Positions 6,632 through 44,333 of a DNA stretch of 64,000 nucleotides are shown in pieces. Positions within the stretch are counted from its first letter, which is position 1. Each line of letters starts with the position of its first letter. Under the pieces are notes generated by a model. It did no database searches and was not told where the DNA came from. It saw only the letters and a program-made list of their open reading frames with translations. The translations under genes and the position numbers were made by a program. Where the stretch lies: assembly GCA_002189035.1 (NCBI GenBank), contig CM007990.1, positions 434,001 through 498,000 on the forward strand, read 5' to 3'. This DNA comes from Utricularia gibba (taxonomy: Eukaryota; Plantae; Magnoliophyta).

Positions 6632-7815
6632 CTACAAGGTGCATTCTTGGGTAGGCCTTGATTTCTGAGACCCGGCTTTGAAAGGGCAGGGGGTCTCCAG
6701 TGGCGGAACCATGCAGTTGTACTGTAGACACACCGAGGTGCTCTGTGGAATCTCCACCGTCGGGTTGATCTGGATCCCCGTCAGATAGTTGTGCTGCAGA
6801 TACAGAACCTGTATGCTTGCCGATAGGATCCTGTCCACGAAGCAACCGGGGACCTGCCCGGAGAATCGGTTGTTGTTCAGGTACAGAACCGGGACCGTTG
6901 AGAACGAGGGCGGTATATCGCCGGAGAGGCGGTTGAAGCTGAGATCGAGGGTCTGGATTTTCACCGGGCTGCCGGTGGGTTGTACGTGGCCGGAGAGCTG
7001 GTTCCTCTGCAGTTGAAGCGTGGTGATGGGGAAGGTGAATAGAATTCCCGGGATCGCGCCGACGAAACGGTTCGCGCTGAGGTCGACGTAGTTTAACTGG
7101 TTTAATGTGGAAATCACGCGGGCGATTGGACCGGAGAGGCGATTTGCGGACAGCGAGAGGTGTTGGAGAGATGAGGGGAGGCCTTGGCGGGGAGCCACCC
7201 GTACAGCTGGTTCTGATTCAAATCCAACCGGGTTAGTTTCTGTGATATCAGCGGCGGGATTGTACCGGTGAGGTGGTTGTGGCAGAGTATGAGGTTTGTT
7301 AGCGCCGGCAGTGTTCCGATCGAAGCAGGGATGGTGCCATTAAGCTGATTGTAACTGAGGTCCAGAGTTTCCAGGCCTTGAAGTGTTCCCAGGTTTTGGG
7401 GAATCTCACCGGAGATAAAATTGCGACTGACAGCTAAAAACTTGAGCGATTTCAATTCCGTGACGTTCTGCGGCAGACGGCCCATTATCCGTCCCGGGAC
7501 GACGGTGAACTCCTCCAGAGCGGTGAGCTTCCCGATGGCAGGATCGAGTCTGCCCATCAACCCAGGGGATCCGGCGCGGGGATCGCCGAGGTTAAGGGCG
7601 CTGACTCTGTCTCCGACACAGTAAACCCCGGCAAAGTTACATGGGTCGGAGGTAAAATCCCATGAAGCGAAGTAGTTGGAGCCAGGCATATCCTTCAAGC
7701 TCTTTCTGATGGATTGCAGGGCCAGGAAATCATTGGGGTCGAGCATGGCCTGGGAGACCACTGCGAAATTCCAAAAGAAAACGAAGATGCAGCAGCAAGA
7801 GCTCCATCTCTCCAT
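6632..7815 (-). CDS. Secreted leucine-rich-repeat protein (no TM or kinase domain), intronless, interrupted by a -1 frameshift near 7184
   Basis: Signal peptide MERWSSCCCIFVFFWNFAVVSQA, LRR N-cap (DFLALQSIRKSL...WDFTSDPCNFAGVYC) and plant LxLSxNxLSGxIP repeats continuing from ORF 7114-7866 into ORF 6632-7198. Confidence 0.92.
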
Positions 7816-8755
7816 CGGAGGAATGAATTTGAAGGGAACGCAGGGGAGGTGGCGATGTGTATGCATATATATATATGTGCAGGATGGTGAAGAAGCTTTA
7901 ACGTGAAGCTTTAATGGAGACAGCCATCAACAGCTGTAGAGTGGCGTAATCATAGAGCCCCCGAAAAGATAGATAGACGTATAAATTTGGCTTCACAGGA
8001 AAGCAATCAAGAAAACTGAAGCCTTATTGATGGTCTTTAGTGCGTGCAGGAGGAGATGGGCCGATGCTTGATGAATAGCCATAGTGGGAAAGGGGGCTGC
8101 CTGTCTCGTGGACCCTGCTGCTCATCAGGCCCCGGTAGGTGGTTTGGTCATTGGAAGGAGTGGGGGCTCCCGTACCTTGCTCCGTCATATTCGGGTATAT
8201 CTCTTCTTCTTCTTATTCTTCTCCTCCTAAACAACAGTTACCATTCCCATTTCTCGCCTTCTCAGGATTGGAAGGATTCCATTTGAGCAGACCAATTACA
8301 AAGCGGCAACGATGACACTCATTCCATCTGACAGGGGGGTTTTGATTGTCATCACCTTAATCCCCCATCCTACATGTCCAGCCTTGCTACTGAGTGAAGC
8401 ATCCCATAATAAGAATCAATAAATGCACTGTTGACGTGGCGTTCTCTGCCTTTTGACCTTTGTCGGGATGGGGAAGCTTCCGCCCGGGCCCCGGCGCAGA
8501 CAATTCCGGCACCCCTCCTCGGTTAGTATAGTTTTCATCATGTGTTTCTGTATTTTTGTCTTCCTCCTATTCCCATTATGCCATCTATCTTCATTCTTGA
8601 AAAGTTGATTTTGCTGAGTTTTGGGGTTTTGGTAGCTCAATGTGGGCATTGGATGAATCGGGTTCATTGATACCCATCATTCAATCCCAAAATCTAGCTC
8701 TCATGTTAGATCCTATGCAAAAAAAGTGTCTTGATAATGCATAAATGTTGTGAGC

Positions 8756-14225: not shown

Positions 14226-14816
14226 TCATGAAATGGCGACGCAGTATGGCAAACTCCTCAGCCTGTCGTTGTGGTGAGACTCGCCGTTGCAACGGTTACC
14301 GGACCACTCGCCGCAGTTGATGACACAGCACCCGCCTCCATCTTCTTCCTCCGCAGTGGCGTCCCATGGACGGCGGGTGTCGGTCTCGTCTTCGGGCTCC
14401 TCGACGCCTTCCCAGTTGTTGCTGATGATATAAAGGCGGAGCCGGCCCTCGTGGCGTTCGATTCCGAAGTGGGTGCTGCAGGAAGACGGCTTAGAGGCTT
14501 TGATCACCAGCCTTCCTTCTTCCCGCTGGGAATGGATATGGAGAGCGATGGAGGTCAGGGGAGGAGGAAAGCTGTAGCTTTTCTTCTTCTCTACGCATTT
14601 AAGCTTTGGGGCGGCAATCGGGGTTTTCCGATACTCCGGCGCTGTTCGATCCACCGGTGGTTCGATGGCGCTCCCGCTCTCACTCCCTAAGCTCTCAGTG
14701 CACATCTCCAAGCTTCTCAAGCTAAGAAACGAACCCGAAACGGGATGAACATACATTTTCTCATGGAGAAGAAGCTTGTTCAGATTGGAGAAGCTCGAAG
14801 AAGAGGACGATGACAT
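14226..14816 (-). CDS. FAF: FANTASTIC FOUR-like protein (DUF3049), intronless
   Basis: Motifs SLEMCTESLGSESG, FPPPLTSI, REEGRLVIKA and ERHEGRLRL. First ATG is at 14816. Confidence 0.92.
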   Translation of the reverse strand: MSSSSSSSFSNLNKLLLHEKMYVHPVSGSFLSLRSLEMCTESLGSESGSAIEPPVDRTAPEYRKTPIAAPKLKCVEKKKSYSFPPPLTSIALHIHSQREEGRLVIKASKPSSCSTHFGIERHEGRLRLYIISNNWEGVEEPEDETDTRRPWDATAEEEDGGGCCVINCGEWSGNRCNGESHHNDRLRSLPYCVAIS

Positions 14817-15333
14817 CACTCGAGAATGTTTCTTCTAAGTTGGACTCAGCTGCAAGTGAAGTTGAAGCAGAAAACTGCAGGCAGCTATGGAAGGAGGAGA
14901 GGTTCTATTTATAGGTTCCAAACCATGGGAACAGAACATAGGTTTATACTGTACAGGATTACTTTTCATCGCTTTAATTCAAATACATGAAAAAAATTCC
15001 AATGTGCCCACAAACATATATTTTAAGATCCTGCACTTTTCATATTGTCTTGGAGCTCAATTGAAAAAACAAGATCCGAATAGTCGATCCGATCCGATCC
15101 GTTTTTTGATCGACCCCATGGTTTCGAAACATGGTAAAAGAAAGTAGCAAGTATTATGCTCCAATAAGTTGGATTGCACAAACTATAATTCAAGAAAAAA
15201 TTGAAAATATTTACGTACTATATCAATTATGAATATGGATAAGAATTGATTCAATTAAATTTAGTTTAACATGTATTTTTATAAAAAAATATAAAATCAT
15301 AACTAGTAAATATGTAAAATAGATAATATCGTG

Positions 15334-25321: not shown

Positions 25322-25758
25322 CTACATTGCTTTTCTTGGTTTGGGGGTGGGGGGAGGGCGTACCGGTACCGGAGACGTGCCGCGGCGGCTGGGGGCGAGG
25401 GAGACCAGTAGATCGGCGAAGGCGGCGAGGACGAACTTGTGGGTGTCCTTAGTGTTCAGGGAGAGGTAGCACATCAGGAGGTGATGCAAGTAGTCCCACT
25501 TGACTTCCGCCCCCCTCCTCACCTCCACCATCTCCTGCATTGATCGCCGGAAGTCGACGTACGGGTCCGCCGAGTAGGTCGGCACCGCCACGCACCCGCC
25601 TCTCATATGCCCCCGCTCCCGGAGGAGTAGTCGACGATGGAGTTGGAGGAGCCGGGGGAAGAGAAGAAGAAGCGCTGAGACGCGATGGCCGACGCGATCG
25701 AGTCCCGTGTCGCCGTCTCCTCCTTGGGGCCATTTTCGTGACTCTCGGCCTCCCACAT
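25322..25758 (-). CDS. OVATE family protein (OFP12/16-like), -1 frameshift at 25610-25614; true start may lie further upstream
   Basis: AIASQRFFFSSPGSSNSI motif in one frame, and the OVATE domain VAVPTYSADPYVDFRRSMQEMV...LLMCYLSLN...FVLAAFADLL in the next. Confidence 0.9.
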
Positions 25759-27126
25759 TGATGAGAAACCAGAAGCAGAACAAGGAATTATTTGTAGTGC
25801 AACTGCCCACACGGACACGGATTTACTGTCCGGACGCCCGTGTCCATCATTTTTTTGAATTAAAAAAACAAAAAATCCCACCAAATTAAAATCAATTATT
25901 AATTCGTATTTAATAACAAAGTCGTTTGTTTTTGGATGAAACGTCAATTTGTGTGTGTGTTTGGAATGGGATGGTTGGTTAGTTCCTTTTGTGGCGCGGC
26001 GGAATCGGCGCAGCCCCGTCGCGCATTTAAAGAAACCGGGGACCAGAAGATCGGTGACCACCGGCTCCCGGAATTCAATGAGCCGTCCGGTCGTCACCAA
26101 CCACCGCGAGCTCGCCACATAACTGACAAGGATCCGCCGCCTAACTCCTCATAACGGATTAACTAACCCCCACCCCAATTCCCAAGCATTCCCAATTTCC
26201 AGTTATTATTATTATTAATCGATTAAATGATATTGGAATTGGTTTACATAAAAATGATGTATTGAATGTGTGTGGGTTTAAAATTTTGTAATCTAATTTA
26301 TATCTATAGATAAATTGATTTTGAATAATATGATATAAAATATATTATCAAAATATTCATAAATTTTCATATCCTGTAACTATAGTACATCATGCATCGT
26401 TGAGGGTAAGGTTGCAAATGAGTTGAGTCGGGCCGAACAATCATAATATGGGCCTACAATATTGGGCTACCCGTGTAATAATCATAATATGGGCCGGGCC
26501 GAAATAAGCAATTTTGGACCCTATTTTATATCTTGAATTTCTATTTTATTATAAATATTTTTCAAAAAAGAAAAACAAATCCATACTCAAATTGGACCTT
26601 TTTCTAATAATAAATAGACCTTGATTTGATCACTCGCATTCATTATTAAAGTAAAAAGAAAAAAATTGAGGATGGACCGGACCATCGTGCCCACATGTCT
26701 CTACAATAACATTTGATCATGTCCGAGCATCTTTTTTTTCTTTCTCTTTTTTGTTTCTCAACATATCATTTCGAAAAATGAGACGTGTTATGTATTTTGA
26801 AGTTACGATCAAATTATGTAAAATAGAATCAGTTTTGAAATTATAAAACTTTGGTATAGAATAATATATAGTTATATTACAAAATTTAATAAAATGATAA
26901 GACATGATCACTAACAAAAATGGATTGGATGGGACTGAATCTGCACAACATGGCCATCAAATTGTCACACTCCTCCCTATTACATCCACTGCCTGAATTC
27001 ACCCTTCTCCTCTGTTTGAATTGCAGGGGAGGAGATAAAGTAGAACAGCTTGAGGTGGCAGTGACAATGGGGGATCTTAATCTGATGATTTTATTTATTT
27101 GTTCTAACATGGGGAGACAACACACC

Positions 27127-30433: not shown

Positions 30434-32297
30434 CTAAGAAGGGGAAGAAGAAGCTCTGGTGCGGGTGAGGGCTTCATATATTCCTCTGATAGTGTGGGGA
30501 GTTGTTCTGCAGCAGCCTCCTACGAGGGATGCGCCTGCTTCGCACCATTTGTTCACGTACGAAACGAAATCTTCATCGGAGACACCGGTGTTTTGCTGAG
30601 AGAGGAAGAGGGAGAGGGAGAGATCATGAGTGGGAGGGAGTGAAACTTACAGAGTGTTGTTAAGAGTCTGGTTTCTCACTCACCACCCATTCCTTTCGAT
30701 CCGGGTCATAGCTCTCGCCACTATTGGGGTAAATGAGTATTGGTTTAGATGTAACCTGATAGAGATTTGGTATCAGTGTGGAGGGGAGAGGATGCAGGGA
30801 ATGTGTTAATGAGTTGGAGATGACAGAATGCTTACCTCTGCGATGGCCCTGATCAGATGCCTGATGAACCTAGGTGGAGTGCAGTTTATTCCAACGGCGA
30901 CTATGTTGTTGGATGATTCAGCAACATTGATGCAGCTCAGCAGAGAATCACCACTCACCACGTTGACTCCATCTTTGGAATTGAAAGAGAGCCATGCAGG
31001 GAGATTGAGTTTTTCTTCCTCCAGCAGCTGAGCAAACGCCTGGTGCAATAACACAGCATTGTAATATTCTATCTGCTGGAAGCATCTGATCATGAAGGGA
31101 TATAATGCACATGTTTTGCAAGAAGATATTTGCAGCACTTCAAAATTTTTAATAGAATTTTCTGACGGCTTCCCAATAGAATGCCCATACCTGAGCTTCC
31201 AGTCTGTTAGGTACTGTTTCGAAGGCTATAAGATCAGGACCCGCATCCGCAAGAACCTTGACCCTTCGCCGGTGAAACTTTTTAAGGAACTCAAGATCCA
31301 CGGCATCTCCATAATCACCACTGCATGTAAATTGATGCTAAGTCTAAACTTTTCCAGGAGATAGGGAGTTCAGGATTAATTTCAAGTTCGAATGAATAAC
31401 TATAACCATCAAAAGAGATCATAAATGATGGGAATTTGTGTCACAGTACCTGTATTCAGAGCCATCAGCAAGGTACGCCCCATAACTTCCAACGGATGCT
31501 GCAACTAATATCTGCCGCTGCTTGTATATCTTACCATCATTATCCTGACCAGCCCCGTTTTCAAGGCACTTGCTATGGTACAGATCCCGTGCCTCGAGAG
31601 CAATTTCAACACTTTTTCTTAGCAAGTTCTCACCCTCTTCGGTAGAATAGCCTTTATTCTCAAACCCCTGTATGGTAGCCTATGCACATTGAAGAACATG
31701 GAGTTTCAGAAACAATGTTCACATAGTGAAGGACAAAAATAACCCAAAGAGAACGAACAATGTACCTGATAAGAGGCAGTTAAGATGATGTCCGCCCCAG
31801 CCTCAAGGTAATCGAGGTGCACCTGTTAGTTAAATCGGATTAAAAAATGAAGCTCACAGCTCCAAAGCACTACATTTCACCCAGTCCACATAAAGAACAT
31901 CAATCCCTAATCAATTCTCTATCTGGAAAATAGAGAATTCACAAAAAACTTGCAATGATGGCGGGAGAAACGTTAATAGACTATGCTGACAACACGAAGA
32001 ACATCAAGTCCTAATTAATTAAATCAACATACAAGTAACCAGCTCAAAAAGAACTAAAACTTGTTACGCCAGCCCATCCTCTACACATTTCACAGACGGC
32101 TTATCGAGAGATAACCAAAACCATACAGCACGAATGAGGTGAGGCGAGGTGAGTAGGCATTTCGCACTCCACAGAGGATCGTTAAGATCAGCTCCGTGTC
32201 TTTCGAGCTCCGTCGCGAGTCCACCGTCGATGACCGCGAAACCGCCGCACTGGCGGAGGAAATCCGTCATAAACCTCTCCGCAATGCCCGTCGACAT
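30434..32297 (-). CDS. HMT: Homocysteine S-methyltransferase (HMT2/3-like), 7 exons
   Basis: [75 protein letters not shown] and GGCCRTTP. Confidence 0.96.
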
Positions 32298-32379
32298 GTC
32301 CAACCGTTCTCTTTTCACTTGCCCGCGGATTGGCAGATTCTAGCGGCAGCCATCGACGCCTCCGGGCCTGAACATAATC

Positions 32380-34008: not shown

Positions 34009-37000
34009 ATGGCAAAGTTTTCAAATGCCGACAACAGGAGAATGTACTCCTGGTGGTGGGATAGTCATATTAGCCCCAAGAACTCGAAGTGGCTTAAGGA
34101 GAATCTCACAGGTCCTTCCTTGTAGTCATATTATCAAGTTTACAGTGTACTGCACCATAATGTAATAAATTATCTGAACCTTTGTCTCCACGGTGGAGAA
34201 AGACAGTGCTGAAAAGCTTCTGTCTTGCACTGTTTTTTATGCTGTTATCCTTGATGCAAATGAGGTTTTTGAGAAGTTTCAGCTGTGCTTGTCCCTTTTC
34301 TCATGTAGATATGGATTCCAAAGTCAAATCGATGATAAAGCTCATTGAAGAAGATGCAGATTCATTTGCCAGGAGAGCAGAGATGTACTACAAAAAGCGG
34401 CCGGAGCTTATGAAATTGGTGGAAGAGTTTTACAGGGCGTATCGAGCATTGGCTGAAAGGTATGATCATGCAACCGGAGTTATCCGGCATGCCCACCGCA
34501 CTATGGCGGAAGCCTTTCCGAACCAAATGCCGGCAATGTTTGCTGATGATTCACCAGTAGGTTCTGCTGATAGTAGAACCTCTGATTCATCTACCCCAGT
34601 AAGTTTTCTTTGAAACAAGATTATTCCTGTTTCTTGATTCTTCTCATTACTTCCTTTTTTGTTCGCTAATGATCCTGACCTCGAACAGAACAGGGAGTTT
34701 ACGGATGATTCTGAATCGGTTGGCCGTAGAAAATCTTTTACACGTTTTAGGGATGAGTTCTTGCCTGTTGATCAGGCAAGGAGAGAGCTTCATTTTGATG
34801 AGATGGAGGAGAAAGAAGACAGCACCCACAGCAATAGGAGGAAGGATCATGACTCTGAGGAGATTATGGCTTTAAAGGAATCCATTGCTAAGCTTGAAGC
34901 TGAGAAAGAAGCTGGCCTTTCTCAGTATCAGCAAAGTTTGGATAGATTATCTGATCTCGAAAAGGAGATGGCCCAGATCAAGGGAAGTTTTGAAGTTCTT
35001 TCTGATCAAGCTAAGAAAGCTGAATCTGAAATCACTATCTTGAACAAGAAACTGACTGAAGTTGAAGCTGAAAAGGAATCTCATCTTCAAAACTACCAGC
35101 AATCTGTGGAGAAGATATCCAAGCTTCAAGAGCATGCTTGGGAACTTGATAAACGAGCCGAATCAGCTAATAGCGAAGCCCAGTCTTTGAGAAGTGAACT
35201 TGAGAAACTGGGATTGGAGAAGGATGCTGCTCTCAATCAGTATATGCAATCGTTGGATCTGAGATCGACACTGGAGAACAAGTTGCAGCTCACTGAAGAA
35301 GATTCTAAGAAGTTGAAAGAGAGAGCAGAGAAAGCGGAGAGTGAAATTCAAGTTCTCAGAGAAACTGTTGCCAAGTTGACTCAAGAAAAGGAAACTGCAG
35401 CTCAGAGATACCAACAGTGCTTGGATACAATCGCCACATTGGAGGAGAAGTTGAAGATTGCTCAGGAAGAGGCGAAGAAACTCAGTTTTGAGGTTACTAG
35501 CAGAGACACAAAGCTGAAGGGAGCTGAAGAACAGTTTTCCCTGTTGGAAAAGTCAAACCAGTCTCTTCATATGGAACTGGAGGCTTTGATGGTAAAAATG
35601 GGAACTCAAAGTCACGAGCTTACAGAGAAGCAGAAGGAGCTTGGAACGCTTTGGGCTCGCATACAGGAAGAAAGACTACGGTTTGTTGAGGCTGAAACGG
35701 CTTTCCAGACTTTGCAGCAGTTGCATGCACAAACTCAGGAAGAGCTTCGAGTTATGGCTTCTGATCTGCAGCACAGGGTTCAGAATATGAAGGCCATGGA
35801 GGCCGAGAAGCAAAGTTTGCAGGATGAATTCTCCGAGATTAAAAAGGAGAACAAGCACCTGGAGCAGCTAAATGCCTCTTTCGAATTGTCGATTAAGGAT
35901 ATGAAGGAGGAGATGTCAAGCTTGGTAGAATCAAAACAGAAACTCAAGGATGAGCTTGAGCTGAGATTTGACCAGAAAAATGCATTACAGCAAGAAATAT
36001 ATTGCCTGAAAGAAAATTTGAATGACTTGAACAAGAAGCATATAGGGATTATGGACCAGGTACATGCTGTTGGCTTGACTGCAGAGTCCTTGGAATCCTC
36101 AGTGAAGGAGTTGAAGAGCGATAATACTCGTCTGCAACAAACTTTGCAGATTGAAAGTAGAGAGAAATCAGCACTGCTCTCAAGGCTGGAAATTCTAGAC
36201 CAGCTCTTTGAGAAAAACTCTCTTCTGGAGAACTCACTAGCTGATTTGAATGCTGAATTAGAAGCTGCCAGGGGGGAGATCAAGAGGTTGGAAGAGTCTT
36301 TCCAGTCCTTGTTAAATGAAAAATCCACTATTCTCGAAGAGAAATCTAGCCTTGCTGTGCAGCTAGAGGAAACAAACAGGAATTTTGAAAAACTTTCGCA
36401 GCATAATGCAGTTTTGGAAAACTCCCTTTCTGATGTGCAGAATCAACTTGAAGTTTTAATGTCCAAGTCTAATATCTTGGAAGATTCACATCAGTTACTT
36501 GTAAATGAGAAAGCTTTGCTAAAGATTGATAATGATGGTCTAAGTGTTCAGTTGGAGGTTATTCAAGGGAAATTGGACGATCTTATGAAACTCTATGGAG
36601 AACTAGAAAAGAGAAATTTCGCACTTGAGAAAGAGAAGGAAGAAAATCTTAGTAATATAGGAGAGTTGCAGTTGTCTTTGGAGGTGGAGAGGCGGGAGCA
36701 TGTTAACGATGTTTATGTAAGTCAAACAAAGTTTAGCGAACTCAAAACCGAGATGGATCATTGGCAGGAAGAATGCAGAAGAAGAGAAGCAGAACTTGAT
36801 CAGATGATGGGTATTGCCTTAAATAATGACATTGAAATACTTGTTCTCGGCATAACTGGCCAGGACTTGATCGAAAGAAACCACTTTCTCCGCAGTGAGA
36901 ATGTTAAACTTTCAGAAGAATCACTTCTACTAGGAAGGAAGATCTCACACTTAGAAGCAAATTATTTGAAGCAACAAGATGATAAAAAGGTTCTGATTGA

Positions 37001-40000
37001 CCAAAATAGAGTCCTGCGAGCAGGGAATCATCAATTGTTGAGGGCTGTCGACATGGCTGAGGATTTCTGCATTGATGCTAAAGGTGAGAAGGATCAGGTT
37101 TATATTGACCAGCTTTTAAGGAGGATTCAAAACATGAAACAATCCCTGAAAAAAAGTGATGATGAGAAAATTGAGGCTTCTCTTGAAATGATTCCACTTC
37201 TCACTTGGATCCGGCAACTGGTACATATGAATGAAGAATTGAGATCCGAGTTGCAAGAGGGAGACTGTTTTAAGGAAACTCAACTGAGGCAGATTGAGGA
37301 TTTGGGGTTAAAGCTAAAGGATATTCAAGCATCTTTCGAAGAGATGCAAAGAGAAAAAACAGAGCTTTATGCAGAGAAATGTTCTTTGACTGATGAGATA
37401 CTGGGTTTGGAGGAAAAGAGCAGTGTCCTTGAAGTGGAAAATGACATTTTGTCTATAGAAATGTTGGATCTAAAAACCATGTCTTTAATTTTCAGAAGGC
37501 TTGTGGATGAAGGAATGTTCACAATACAAAATCTCATGAAAGATCTGACAACTCTTCAGGACAAGAATGCTACCCTCGTGGGAAAGCTGCAGTTGGCAGA
37601 AGGAAGGTTGCAAGACGTTGAAATCGAAAATCTTCGTCAAAAGGAGGTGCTGCAGAAGATGGATGAAGAAGCCAAGGACTTCGCATTTTTAAAGAATCAG
37701 TTGTATCATGAGATCGAAAGTGGGAAAAAAATGTTGCAGCAGGCGGCGCTGGAACTTAAGTTGGCTGAAGAGAAACTTGTTGTAGTGGAAGAAGAGAAAT
37801 TTGAGTCAAAAAGGCAAGTGGAAGATCTAAGTGTGCTGTATAATATACTCAAAGTGAATCACAACGAACAGGGGAATCAGATCCTGAAACTATCAACAGA
37901 CGCATGCCATTTGAGGATTGAGAATGAACTCTTTCACGATGTGAGCGGGAACCTTGAAGGTGAACTGCAAAACAAATCCGAAGAGATAAACAGGTTGAAT
38001 GATGAGATTGAAAATGGAAAAAAAATGTTGCAGCAGGTGGGGTTGCAACTTAAGTTGGTAGAAGAGAAGCTGGTTGTAGTTGAGGAAGAGAAATGCCAGT
38101 CAAAAAGGCAAGTTGAAGGTCTGAGTGTGCTATACAATGAGCTCAAAGCGCGCCATGACGAGCAGGGAAATCAGATCTTGAAACTGTCAACAGATGCATG
38201 TCATTTGAGCATTGAAAATAATTTGTCGCATGATGTGAGCTTAATCCTTGAGGACGAGCTTGAAAAAAGATATGCAGAGATGAAGAAGTTGAATGATGAG
38301 ATTGAAAATGGAAAAAAATCATACACCAGGTGGGTCTGGAACTTAAGTTAGCAGAAGTGAAACTCGTTTTAGTAGAGAAAGAGAAGTTTGAGTCAAAAAA
38401 GCAAGTGGAAGGTCTGAATACGCTGTACAATGAGGTCAAAATGCGTCAAGATGAATACGAGAATCAGCTCCTGAAACTATCAACAGGCACATGCCATTTG
38501 AGCATTGAGAATGATTTCTTGCACGATGTGAGCCGAAAGCTTGAAGATGAGCTGCAAAGCAAGTCTGGAGAGATGAATAGGTTGAGTGATGAGATTGAAA
38601 GTGGGAAAAACATGTTACAGAAAGTGGCACTGGAACTTAAGTTAGCAGAAGAGAAACTGATTGTAGTGGAGGAAGAAAAATTTGAGTTAAAAAGGCAAGT
38701 GGAGGATCTAAGTACGCTATACAGTGAGCTGAAAGTGCGTCAGGATGAACAGGGGAATCAGATACTGAAACTTTCATCAGAGACAAGCCATTTGAGCATT
38801 GAGAATGATTTCTTGCATGATGTGAACTTAAGCCTTGAAGATGAGATGGAAAACAGATCTGAAGAGATCAACAAGTTGAATGATGAGATTGAAAGTGGAA
38901 AAAAAATGTTGCAGCAGATGGCGCTGGAATTTAACTTAGCAGAAGAGAGACTGATTGTAGTAGAAGAAGAGAAACTTGACTCAAAAAGGCAAGTGGAAGA
39001 TCTGAGTATGCTGTATAATGCACTCAAAGTGAATCACAACGAACAGGGGAATCAGATCCTGAAATTATCAACAGACACATGCCATTTGAGCATTGAGAAT
39101 TACTTCTTGCACGATGTGTGCAGAAACCTTGAGGATGAAATGCATAACAAAGACGAAGAGATAAGCAAGTTGGACAGAGGAGCTTCATCTATTCTGAGGC
39201 AATTTTTTCATGTCATGGTAACTCAGCTTCTATACGAGCAGAAGTGCCATGAACTTCAGGAAGCCTGTCTTGAATTCATGTATCAAAATGAAGCTCTTAA
39301 AACTGAATTGGCATCACTTGCCCCAGACATTGAGTCAATGAGGGAATGCGTTTGGTCACTAGAGAACTACACTAGTACACACATGAAGCTTCACCATCCC
39401 AAGGACGAGAAGCTGGAGGTACATTTGGAAAAAAATGAAATTTCAAATTTTGAGGACTTGAATTATCTGCTTTATCATTCCAATTTCATGCGGCTTCAAC
39501 TGACTATTTTATCCATTTCTAGGATCCTGATGCTGCTAAGAGTTTGGATGAAGTCGCCTCGAGCAAAAATGAGAAGCATATGCTGCAAGATCCCTTCATG
39601 GATCTGCATGGTAGACTTCAAGTGGCTGTAAAGACAGTAATGGGCATAAATGATCATTTGATTCAAGAAAGCGGTGATCTGCGTTCCAAATTGGACGCTT
39701 CAAATAAGCAACTGGAGTTGTTGCAGAATGAGGTTCAGAATATGAGGCCAAAATCTGAAATAACAGAGGCTGATGATGCTCTTTTGACTAAAGATATTGT
39801 GCTTGATCAGGCGTCGGATGGCAGTAACCGTCATGCAGTTGATGAAAATCATGTCTTGAAGCTATGGGAGATATCTGATCCAGACCCAACACTCAGAACA
39901 CCCAAGAAAAAAGAAGTTTTGGGATCATTTACCGAGGAAGAACTAACCTTGGGGATGCTAGAAACCTCAAAAAAGTCAGCTGATCTGGTCCATGAAGTAA

Positions 40001-40521
40001 ACAATATGAAGATCTTGCAGAGGCTGGGCTCTGATGTTCAGAAACTGGTGAATCTCCAACTCACCGTCCAGGACTTGAAAAAGAAACTCAATGTCACCGA
40101 GAAACACCAACGCGGCAAGGCTGTGATTGTGTGTGAAGCACTGAAGGGACAACTTGAAGAAGCTGACACAGCCATCTTAAAGTTGTTTGATGTCAACGAC
40201 AAGCTGATGAAAAACGTCGATGACAGGGCTTCTTTCGAGATTAAGTCATTCTCCTCGTTCGACTTCGAAGGGGAAGACGGTGGAGCCAGGAGGAGGAAGT
40301 TATCTCTGCAGGCATGTAGAATGTCGGAGAAGATTGGAAGGTTGCAGTTGGAAGTACAAAGATTACAGCTTGATCTGCTGAAACTGATGGATTATCAACA
40401 AGGAGGCAAAACAAAGACATCAATGAAAAGAATCCTTCTGAGGGATTACATCTACGGAAGAACCAGATTCAAAGACAAAAAGGCTCTTGTTTGCTGCCTG
40501 CAGCCTTCAACCAAGGAATGA
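34009..40521 (+). CDS. NET1: NETWORKED 1 actin-binding protein (NAB/KIP1 domain plus long coiled coil), about 2040 aa, 4 exons, -1 frameshift at 38312-38318
   Basis: [22 protein letters not shown]|[34 protein letters not shown] and C-terminal [12 protein letters not shown]...[12 protein letters not shown]...ILLRDYIYG. Exons 34009-34111, 34309-34598, 34689-39418 and 39523-40521 total 6122 nt, one short of a multiple of three. Confidence 0.95.
37710..39172 (+). repeat. Five tandem 294-bp coding repeats inside NET1
   Basis: Unit starts gagat(c/t)gaaa at 37710, 38004, 38298, 38591 and 38885, giving spacings of 294, 294, 293 and 294. Confidence 0.97.
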
Positions 40522-42162: not shown

Positions 42163-44333
42163 ATGTACAACAATAGGAGCAGCGGGAGCAGCAAAATGGA
42201 CATTCTCTGGGCGGATTCCGGGGAACCCCACCTGCCGGAAAGTCCCAGGGGTCCGATGGAGTTTCTGTCGAGGTCGTGGAGCGCCTCGGCGCTTCAGGTT
42301 TTCAAGGCTCTGAGTCACAACCAGTCGGTGAATCTTCCCAAAGCTAACTCCGGCGCCGCAGTTGTATCCCCGGCGGAACATGTTGGTGCTGAAGAGGAGC
42401 CTGGTAGACTTTCTAGGAACACCTTCTCCTTCGCTTCCTCTGCAACATGCCAGCTCATACTCGAGCGGATTATGTCTCAGTCTGTAAGTTCGTTGCACAC
42501 ATTCGAATTTCCTGCAACATTTTGGGTCCTCATTGTTGTGTAATTGCAGGAGATCTCGCCTCTGACATCAGGGAGGCTTTCACACAGCAGTGGACCTCTC
42601 AATGGCTGTATGAATGAAGAGAACGAGAGTCCTCCGGTCTCACCTTATGAGGAGGAGTACGAAGATGTTGTCAAGGTTTGTTTTGTGTCAACAAGTGATT
42701 AACTCTCTAAAGATGTGCGACAATATCTGCTTTTGTTTCTTTCTGAAATCTGCTTTGTTGACTTCGCTAAAAATCTCAACTTTTTCGGTTTTCCTTGTTT
42801 GGTTGATGCTTTTTCTTCTATGCGTGCCGTAGGCTATAGTAGCTGGTTGAGTGGTTCAGTGGATAACGTCGTCTCAGTCGATTCGTGGTTTTTTTAGTTG
42901 ATTTTGAGTGCTGACACAGTAAAATTTATTGCGTTTGTTGCTTGAGTGTCACTGGATGAGGCCCCATTTCTGGAAAAAGATGGGAGCTTTGATAAGTTTA
43001 CTGTGTTTGATGAGGACCCATTTTCAACGTGAATAGTATTTCAACGCCAAGAACACACTGCAACCTCTGTTCACCGGAACTCCTCGGGCCGGTGGCGGCA
43101 CCAGCGGCGTCGCAACGCCGGGAGGGAAGAAGGTGGGTAGGTGGCTCAAGGAGCGGAAGGAGAAGAAGAAGGAGGAAACCAGGGCTCAGAGTGCGCAGAT
43201 TCATGCGGCTGTTTCAGTTGCAGGAGTTGCTGCTGCCGTCGCCGCCATCGCCGCCGCGACGGCAGCCGCATCTTGTAAGGGACAAGACGAACAGATGGCT
43301 AAGACCGACATGGCAGTGGCTTCCGCTGCCACTTTGGTGGCCGCCCAGTGCGTAGAAGCGGCGGAGGCCATCGGCGCCGACCGAGACCATCTACTTTCCG
43401 CGGTTTCCTCTGCCGTCAACGTCCGATCCCACGGCGATATTTCCACTCTCACCGCCGCTGCCGCCACCGGTAAACCAACTAAAAATCATACCCCCTGTTC
43501 TCTTCCACCCAAAGAACAGCACAGAACTAACCTTTTTTCCTTTCTGTTTTCCTCCCAAGCTCTCCGAGGAGTTGCTACCTTGAAAGCTAGAGCTTTGAAA
43601 GAAGTATGGAATGTTGCAGCGGCAATTCCCATTGAAAGGGGAATTAACAACACCAATGTGGATGGCCACTTAGATGATCTTGTTGCAGAGGAAAACTTCC
43701 TTGCTGCGTGCAATCAAGAGATGCTTGCTCGTGGCTGTGAGCTTCTGAAAAGAACCCGAAAAGGTAGCAACTACACAGTTCTTGTGCAAAGACCAACAGT
43801 TGTTGTGATCTTGACAGAGAAACAACTTTTTCTTCCTTCTCAGGTGATCTCCATTGGAAGATTGTCTCAGTTTACCTCCACAGGAGTGGAAACGTAAGTT
43901 TGCTTCATCATCCTCACAAAAAGCATTGTTACAGGCATGCCATTCGAACTCTCAAGCTTTCATGAATTTTAAATGCAGGTCATGCTGAAGATGAAGAGCA
44001 AGCATGTGGGCAAGACCATCACTAAGAAGAAGAAAAGTACCTACTTTTGTTCTCCAAAGTTCAAACTTCAATGCACTTTTCGAGTTTTTTCACAACTTTT
44101 CATCACCCACAGGTGTTGTTCTAGAGGTTACTAGAAATGTACCTGCATGGCCGGGCCGGCATCTGCTTGAAGATGGCGAGCAGAGGCGATACTTCGGGCT
44201 GAAAACCTACGGAAGAGGAACAGTAGAATTCGAATGCAGGAATGCTAAAGAGTATGAAATGTGGACACAAGGAGTCTCCAGGCTCCTCGCCATTGTTGCA
44301 GAAAGGAAGAGAAGGCATCAACCATGTTACTAG
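42163..44333 (+). CDS. VAN3-binding / FORKED-like protein (DUF828 plus plant PH-like domain), multi-exon
   Basis: [64 protein letters not shown] and RRYFGLKT...EFEC...WTQGVSRLL. Start is ATG 42163 or 42196. Confidence 0.95.

Follow-up and report, generated by a model that had tools for sequence, protein, structure and literature searches.

NET1 proteins have a NAB domain, which binds actin, at the N-terminus and a long coiled-coil rod behind it; they are regarded as linkers that connect actin, via a partner still unknown, with the membrane of plasmodesmata or the plasma membrane. Within a stretch of 64,000 nucleotides from Utricularia gibba (assembly GCA_002189035.1, contig CM007990.1, positions 434,001 to 498,000 of the forward strand; hereafter the window, numbered from its first letter), a gene of this type harbors a tandem array of five 98-codon units in the part coding for the rod, and the reading frame breaks in the third of them.

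Five tandem units in the rod of a NET1D-type gene

With Tandem Repeats Finder, a single array is detected at 37699-39172 with a period of 294, 5.0 copies, 79% matches and a score of 1793, which is divided into five units when set in the register of the protein (Table 1). This bears out the preliminary description of the window, in which five tandem 294-bp units had been placed in the NET1 rod at this site and the motifs of which were also found. Between units, pairwise identity amounts to 0.77-0.86 at the nucleotide and 0.57-0.76 at the amino acid level, and the DNA alignment does not show any indels apart from a one-base deficit of unit 3. As units without indels follow one another and 98 equals 14 × 7, one heptad phase is kept through the whole insert of 490 residues. 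In a sliding count of core residues over 28 positions, the same heptad register extends from 11 residues before unit 1 to 23 residues after unit 5. In the best register, 98 of the 140 a/d positions are hydrophobic (70%), compared to 15-47% in the other six registers and 35% overall across the 490 residues. The preserved phase that had been deduced earlier from the unit length is therefore supported, as far as these crude methods go. In the best of five AlphaFold2 models of units 1 and 2 (predicted local distance difference test score, pLDDT, 90.5), the segment is predicted to be helical (residues 2-29, 34-127, and 132-195), with one helix (34-127) crossing the joint between the units and a short break at residues 30-33 of each unit.

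The gene harboring the array consists of four exons spanning 34009-40521 on the plus strand and, as judged from its sequence, is of the NET1D type and hence a member of the NET1 subfamily rather than of NET2-4. Exon 1 shows 85-88% identity to residues 1-34 of the Sesamum and Paulownia NET1D proteins (tblastn), exon 2 matches the Pfam family KIP1 (PF07765; E = 8.9e-26, 90 bits versus a cutoff of 33.9), and the first piece of exon 3 (34689-38348) has its best matches in NET1D proteins from Lamiales (Sesamum, Paulownia, Salvia, and Rehmannia) at 50-56% identity. All informatively named top matches are NETWORKED 1D/1A/1C-like (E = 0, 89-99% coverage). The rod itself gives weak tropomyosin-type Pfam matches and aligns along its length to NET1D rods, as would be expected of NET1 proteins, which are characterized by a long C-terminal coiled coil and a size of about 1700 amino acids or more. 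Accordingly, the earlier assignment to NET1 is confirmed by the KIP1/NAB domain, the WWW motif and the best matches in Lamiales. An N-terminal NAB (KIP1) domain with a tryptophan triplet preceded by YS is a feature of NET1 and NET2 proteins (PMC4046492), and in line with this, YS precedes the triplet encoded by exon 1. For a member of the Lamiales, the gene is unusually diverged, showing 60% identity to Sesamum versus 65-66% for the Fraxinus and Henckelia proteins compared with Sesamum, and such divergence is consistent with rapid evolution of its lineage.

The Sesamum and Paulownia protein models skip exactly 34599-34688 in the tblastn alignment, and the two in-frame stops of intron 2 were consequently rejected as marks of a pseudogene. 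The length of this intron keeps the frame, and a bacterial-style scan for open reading frames shows a break just after the NAB domain.

Table 1. Features of the Utricularia gibba window; positions count from the first letter of the window.
Feature	Position	Strand	Basis
Five 98-codon unit array, protein register	37710-39178	+	Tandem Repeats Finder, DNA and protein alignment, dN/dS, heptad register, unit tree
Unit 1	37710-38003	+	
Unit 2	38004-38297	+	
Unit 3, 293 bp	38298-38590	+	
Unit 4	38591-38884	+	
Unit 5	38885-39178	+	
A7 run in unit 3, site of the frame break	38312-38318	+	DNA alignment, list of open reading frames
NET1D exon 1, start codon at 34009, NAB start with YSWWWDSHI	34009-34111	+	Translation of open reading frame; GT donor 34112
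Exon 2, rest of the NAB/KIP1 actin-binding domain	34309-34598	+	Pfam; AG acceptor 34307-34308, GTAAGT donor 34599
Intron 2, 90 nt, in-frame stops at 34611 and 34644	34599-34688	+	Starts GTAAGT; skipped by orthologues
Exon 3, coiled-coil rod including the array, frame breaks in unit 3	34689-39418	+	Translations, tblastn in two frames, donor 39419
Intron 3, 104 nt	39419-39522	+	GT 39419, AG 39521-39522; orthologue alignment changes frame across it
Exon 4, conserved C-terminal region and stop	39523-40521	+	Translation; tblastn, 50-53% identity to orthologue C-termini
Homocysteine S-methyltransferase-like exons, just upstream of NET1D	~30800-32320	-	By eye only
FANTASTIC FOUR-domain gene	14226-14819	-	
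Auxin-canalisation (PF05703) gene	43133-43897	+	
Intact PPR-E-DYW editing-factor-type open reading frame, 936 amino acids	51851-54661	+	

When homologues are scored with a profile of the five units, most NET1D proteins across eudicots contain one copy of the segment, corresponding to residues 1196-1289 in Sesamum alatum. In a tree of 64 units, the five from U. gibba form one clade (100/100) which is nested in the core Lamiales on a long stem. Since they group together among single-copy sequences from Lamiales, the amplification occurred in this lineage, as had already been proposed. Synonymous divergence (dS) between the units ranges from 0.23 to 0.96, and the ratio of nonsynonymous to synonymous divergence (dN/dS) from 0.15 to 0.61 across all ten unit pairs. 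Differences are concentrated at third codon positions (276 differences, as against 154 at first and 151 at second positions), and the longest identical tracts between units are mostly 14-31 bp long, reaching 43 bp between units 1 and 5. Because of this synonymous divergence and the shortness of the identical tracts, the array is, by sequence criteria, old, stable and maintained rather than a young and unstable expansion. As an old array with short identical tracts, it should be a poor substrate for ongoing unequal crossover, and the length polymorphism that had been suggested for it is not favored. Searching 1.84 billion cluster representatives with the unit profile yielded 13 weak matches, the best from Andrographis with two stretches, and neither a close relative nor another five-copy protein was present among these representatives.

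The frame break in the third unit

Unit 3 shows seven A where units 2 and 5 read GGA, eight A, and then TG, and it measures 293 bp because its A-run is one base shorter than in these two. After the run, frame 0 ends at a stop codon at 38349-38351. Everything beyond, comprising the remaining 2.8 units, what is left of exon 3 and the whole of exon 4, is open once the frame is set back by one base (371 codons in exon 3 and 332 codons in exon 4 after the break). Accordingly, the list of open reading frames contains three successive ones in three frames (34659-38351, 38330-39631, and 39544-40521). The second change of frame is due to the ordinary intron 3, and the first reflects the one-base deficit of unit 3, where no intron is present. 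After splicing, the coding sequence has a length of 6122 nt with its stop codon, whereas 2040 codons plus stop would take exactly one base more. Hence, the frame is not continuous through the array as the preliminary description had implied, and the protein of about 2040 amino acids (aa) given there is obtained only with one base added to the assembly, while the product as assembled has 1351 aa.

Searches were run with the exon 3 pieces on either side of the break as separate queries. The offset scan and unit profile used both pieces side by side with XX at the break, and downstream identity was counted on the last part of exon 3 fused to exon 4. In comparison with orthologues, no second lesion was found in the 6.1 kb of coding sequence. 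Identity to Sesamum and Paulownia is 57-58% downstream of the array versus 60% upstream, and the same near-equality is seen in pairs of intact orthologues.

Taken together, the deficit in the A-run is probably a homopolymer error of the long-read assembly. Such an error is favored because a lone base is missing in a homopolymer with no other lesion in the coding sequence, because the copies after the break show purifying selection, and because conservation of the C-terminus equals that of the N-terminal rod. From the dN/dS values and the third-position bias of all unit pairs it follows that, during almost their entire history, the copies after the break were translated in the same phase as the preceding ones. 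Moreover, an LRR gene in the window, and probably an OVATE gene as well, is likewise one base short, which also speaks for an assembly error. The intronless LRR gene (LRRNT_2 and LRRs; 6632-7866, minus strand) is split into two overlapping open reading frames, with Pfam LRR matches ending at about 7207 and resuming at about 7174 one base back, so that the break falls at about 7171-7207 beside short GGG/CCCC runs and appears to be of the same one-base type as that of the NET1D gene. In the OVATE-family gene (25322-26118, minus strand), a conserved RFFFSSPG-type motif upstream is encoded one base out of frame with the OVATE domain (Pfam, E = 9e-24), the break being located at about 25600-25625 near a G5 run, and this is probably another one-base deficit.

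Alternatively, the frameshift might be real, and the gene would then either be a very recent pseudogene or encode a protein of 1351 aa that keeps the NAB domain, the larger part of the rod and 2.2 units and loses the conserved C-terminal third. The sequence as given does contain seven A and the stop at 38349-38351, and A-runs are genuine mutational hot spots. Yet no second lesion has accumulated, the part downstream is as conserved as the part upstream, and the copies after the break show dN/dS values of 0.26-0.61. With this downstream conservation and post-break selection, a real break would need to be very young, and the same deficit in other genes of the window fits a systematic assembly error. 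We consider a real frameshift unlikely, though not to be dismissed lightly. For annotation, the distinction is of practical relevance: without a check of the A-run deficit against the reads, the locus will end up as a pseudogene or as two separate genes.

Arrays in other NET1 rods and the role of rod length

In the preliminary description, NET1 proteins were taken to lack such a repeat. This does not hold, as a survey of 120 homologues by an ungapped offset scan together with the iterated unit profile revealed that the homologous segment is amplified in Solanaceae, Salvia, Andrographis and Castilleja as well, and that other arrays occur elsewhere in the rod; the survey rests on database gene models, some of them possibly wrong, and independence was tree-tested for a subset of the arrays only. 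Copy numbers of the homologous segment in Solanaceae are three in Nicotiana and Solanum verrucosum, four in Capsicum, Lycium and Withania, five in Datura and S. stoloniferum, and six in S. bulbocastanum, the array having a period of 95 aa at residues ~1000-1580 and differing in copy number between close species. The Solanaceae units form a separate clade (100/99) in the unit tree, and the Solanaceae array is therefore independent of the one in U. gibba. An origin of the array before the split of Lamiales and Solanales was rejected, as the units of the window and those of Solanaceae fall into two distinct clades, each well supported, and the majority of Lamiales carry a single copy. Units 3 and 4 of S. 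bulbocastanum are almost identical, from which it appears that the Solanaceae array is still turning over. Further amplifications of the homologous segment are found in Salvia splendens and S. divinorum (182 aa, three and two copies, respectively), Andrographis paniculata (105 aa, two copies) and Castilleja. Arrays nearby or further upstream in the rod are present in Ipomoea (70 aa, five copies), Cornus (101 aa, three copies), Oleaceae (158 aa, two to three copies), Bertholletia (126 aa), Perilla (67 aa), Herrania (74 aa), Cinchona (66 aa) and Hibiscus (about 285-296 aa). The U. gibba array is thus not unique, the same segment of the rod having been expanded independently several times in plants. 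A further duplication of 147 aa with 100% identical copies, at residues ~1056-1393 of a Sesamum latifolium NET1D (record marked UNVERIFIED_CONTAM), may be very recent or an artefact of assembly or annotation.

Counting one event per lineage, 16 amplification events were obtained, of which eight have periods that are exact multiples of 7 (seven of 15 when the U. gibba array is left out, binomial p = 0.003), and in 14 of the 16 the period is 0, 3 or 4 modulo 7. For 11 of the 16 events, the midpoint lies within residues 1000-1380 of the NET1D protein from Sesamum alatum, an interval covering roughly one fourth of the rod (p = 2e-4, an exploratory value since the bounds were set after the data had been seen). 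These arrays illustrate how coiled-coil geometry would filter surviving internal duplications, mostly for whole heptads and otherwise for offsets of three or four residues. A description of recurrent amplification of the NET1 rod was not found in the searchable NET literature: a 2014 paper on NET evolution and a 2025 review on NET and VAP27 (PMC12127668) do not contain the word "repeat," and internal repeats are not discussed in the paper on tomato SD1, a NET1-like protein. Independently of these arrays, an old periodicity of 56 aa (8 heptads, with echoes at 112 and 168) is visible in exon 3 at ~35100-35400 and shared by nearly all NET1 homologues, as is a periodicity of 63 aa (9 heptads), the periodic regions of the rod lying at residues ~200-400 and ~650; this suggests that the rod was first built by duplications of heptad multiples.

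The four extra units add ~392 residues or, at ~0.15 nm per residue, roughly 58 nm, so that the arithmetic of the preliminary description holds and the rod would be about 58 nm longer than the one-copy form if it is a continuous coiled coil. It is conceivable that this extra length is adaptive, with the NET1D rod acting as a spacer tuned by in-phase modules, a "molecular ruler," and the amplified segment being the preferred site of tuning across asterids. Put more broadly, the distal half of the NET1 rod would be a recurrent target of independent, mostly phase-compatible amplification in asterids and other eudicots, with selection tuning the length of the linker and the five-unit array representing one extreme. 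The clustering of independent amplifications in one part of the rod, the enrichment of periods that are multiples of 7 and the retention of all U. gibba units under purifying selection without indels are in line with such tuning. However, the same pattern is expected from an insertion-tolerant part of the rod combined with selection removing out-of-phase insertions, the largest other case, in Solanaceae, has a period of 95 aa which is not a multiple of 7, and no partner, geometry or phenotype is known. Both the tuned spacer and its broader version are accordingly regarded as improbable. F-actin binding and localization to the plasma membrane and plasmodesmata are known for Arabidopsis NET1A only, and how NET1 proteins reach the membrane is still unknown according to the 2025 review (PMC12127668). 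A spacer or ruler function of the array, as put forward in the preliminary description, is speculation. The arrays of U. gibba, Solanaceae, Salvia and others provide naturally occurring rods in which one segment varies between one and six modules, and these could be employed for probing whether rod length matters for localization or plasmodesmal function.

Two further readings carry very little weight. Although tandem repeats are classic sites of misassembly, a copy number wrongly expanded or collapsed during assembly is highly improbable, since the units differ at 14-24% of their bases with every unit unique, which together with their dS values and short identical tracts makes such an error unlikely, since the array of only 1.5 kb lies well inside single long reads, and since the differences are codon-structured, as those between artefactual copies would not be. 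Equally remote is a bypass of the break during expression, whether through a splice that excises some of the array or through slippage at the A-run during transcription or on the ribosome: the seven-A run is a potential slippery site and CAG|GTGGG-like donor strings recur in all units, but there is no acceptor at a workable distance and the selection on all five units argues for their translation. A frame-restoring intron at the break was rejected, as the only GT...AG pair, formed with the nearest AG, spans 22 nt and is too short. Slippage at A7 by the nuclear machinery is not known to be an established mechanism for plant genes, which also counts against a bypass.

The explanation we favor on balance, with somewhat more reserve as a whole than the assembly error taken by itself, combines an old, in-phase and lineage-specific NET1D array with a homopolymer error. 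In this scenario, a rod segment of 98 residues (14 heptads), single-copy in most eudicots, was multiplied in this lineage to five copies arranged head to tail, for which unequal crossing-over or replication slippage would be the simplest route. The units have since diverged under purifying selection without any indel, one heptad phase being kept through 490 residues and the flanks, and the real product would probably be an intact protein of ~2040 aa, the deficit in the A-run most likely being due to the assembly. Several points weigh against this explanation. The heptad analysis is a crude hydrophobicity count and not a calibrated coiled-coil predictor, and the AlphaFold2 model is a single-sequence monomer, with just one of five models being confident. 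In addition, no independent sequence of this species over the A-run was retrieved at E <= 1e-10 (query 38321-39418, candidates of 201-640 aa), and neither this fragment-sized search nor the one among cluster representatives gave a sequence contradicting a real frameshift.

Comparison with related and unrelated coiled-coil proteins

The closest counterparts are the NET1D proteins of Sesamum alatum (1760 aa) and Paulownia fortunei (1764 aa), which share with the U. gibba gene the NAB/KIP1 domain, the position of intron 2, the long rod and the conserved C-terminus at 57-60% identity over the aligned parts. In both, the 98-aa segment is found at the same place but in one copy instead of five. The NET1D/NET1C-like proteins of Solanaceae resemble the U. 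gibba protein in carrying the homologous segment head-to-tail with a similar top copy number and total length (2068 aa in Solanum bulbocastanum), whereas their array is of independent origin, has a period of 95 aa and includes some near-identical copies, in contrast to the old and diverged units of U. gibba. The NET1 proteins of Salvia and Andrographis, likewise from Lamiales, are expanded in the same region of the rod with periods of 26 and 15 heptads, respectively, but differ in unit boundaries and lengths, show fewer copies and represent separate events on the unit tree.

Beyond plants, streptococcal M proteins possess a coiled-coil rod in which the number of tandem repeats changes by intragenic recombination. 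Unlike the NET1D rod, however, these are bacterial surface proteins under immune selection and rapidly variable in size, and there is no homology between the two. In the cytoplasmic tails of chicken BG proteins, members of the butyrophilin family, a coiled coil varies by heptad-sized coding modules and unequal crossing-over has been invoked (PMC5938342). As in the U. gibba gene, the length of the coiled coil is changed there by gain or loss of heptad modules, although the proteins are unrelated: in BG tails, single heptads encoded by 21-nt exons vary between alleles and paralogues (PMC5938342), whereas in U. gibba a block of 14 heptads within one exon has been multiplied, and the resulting array is old and probably fixed.

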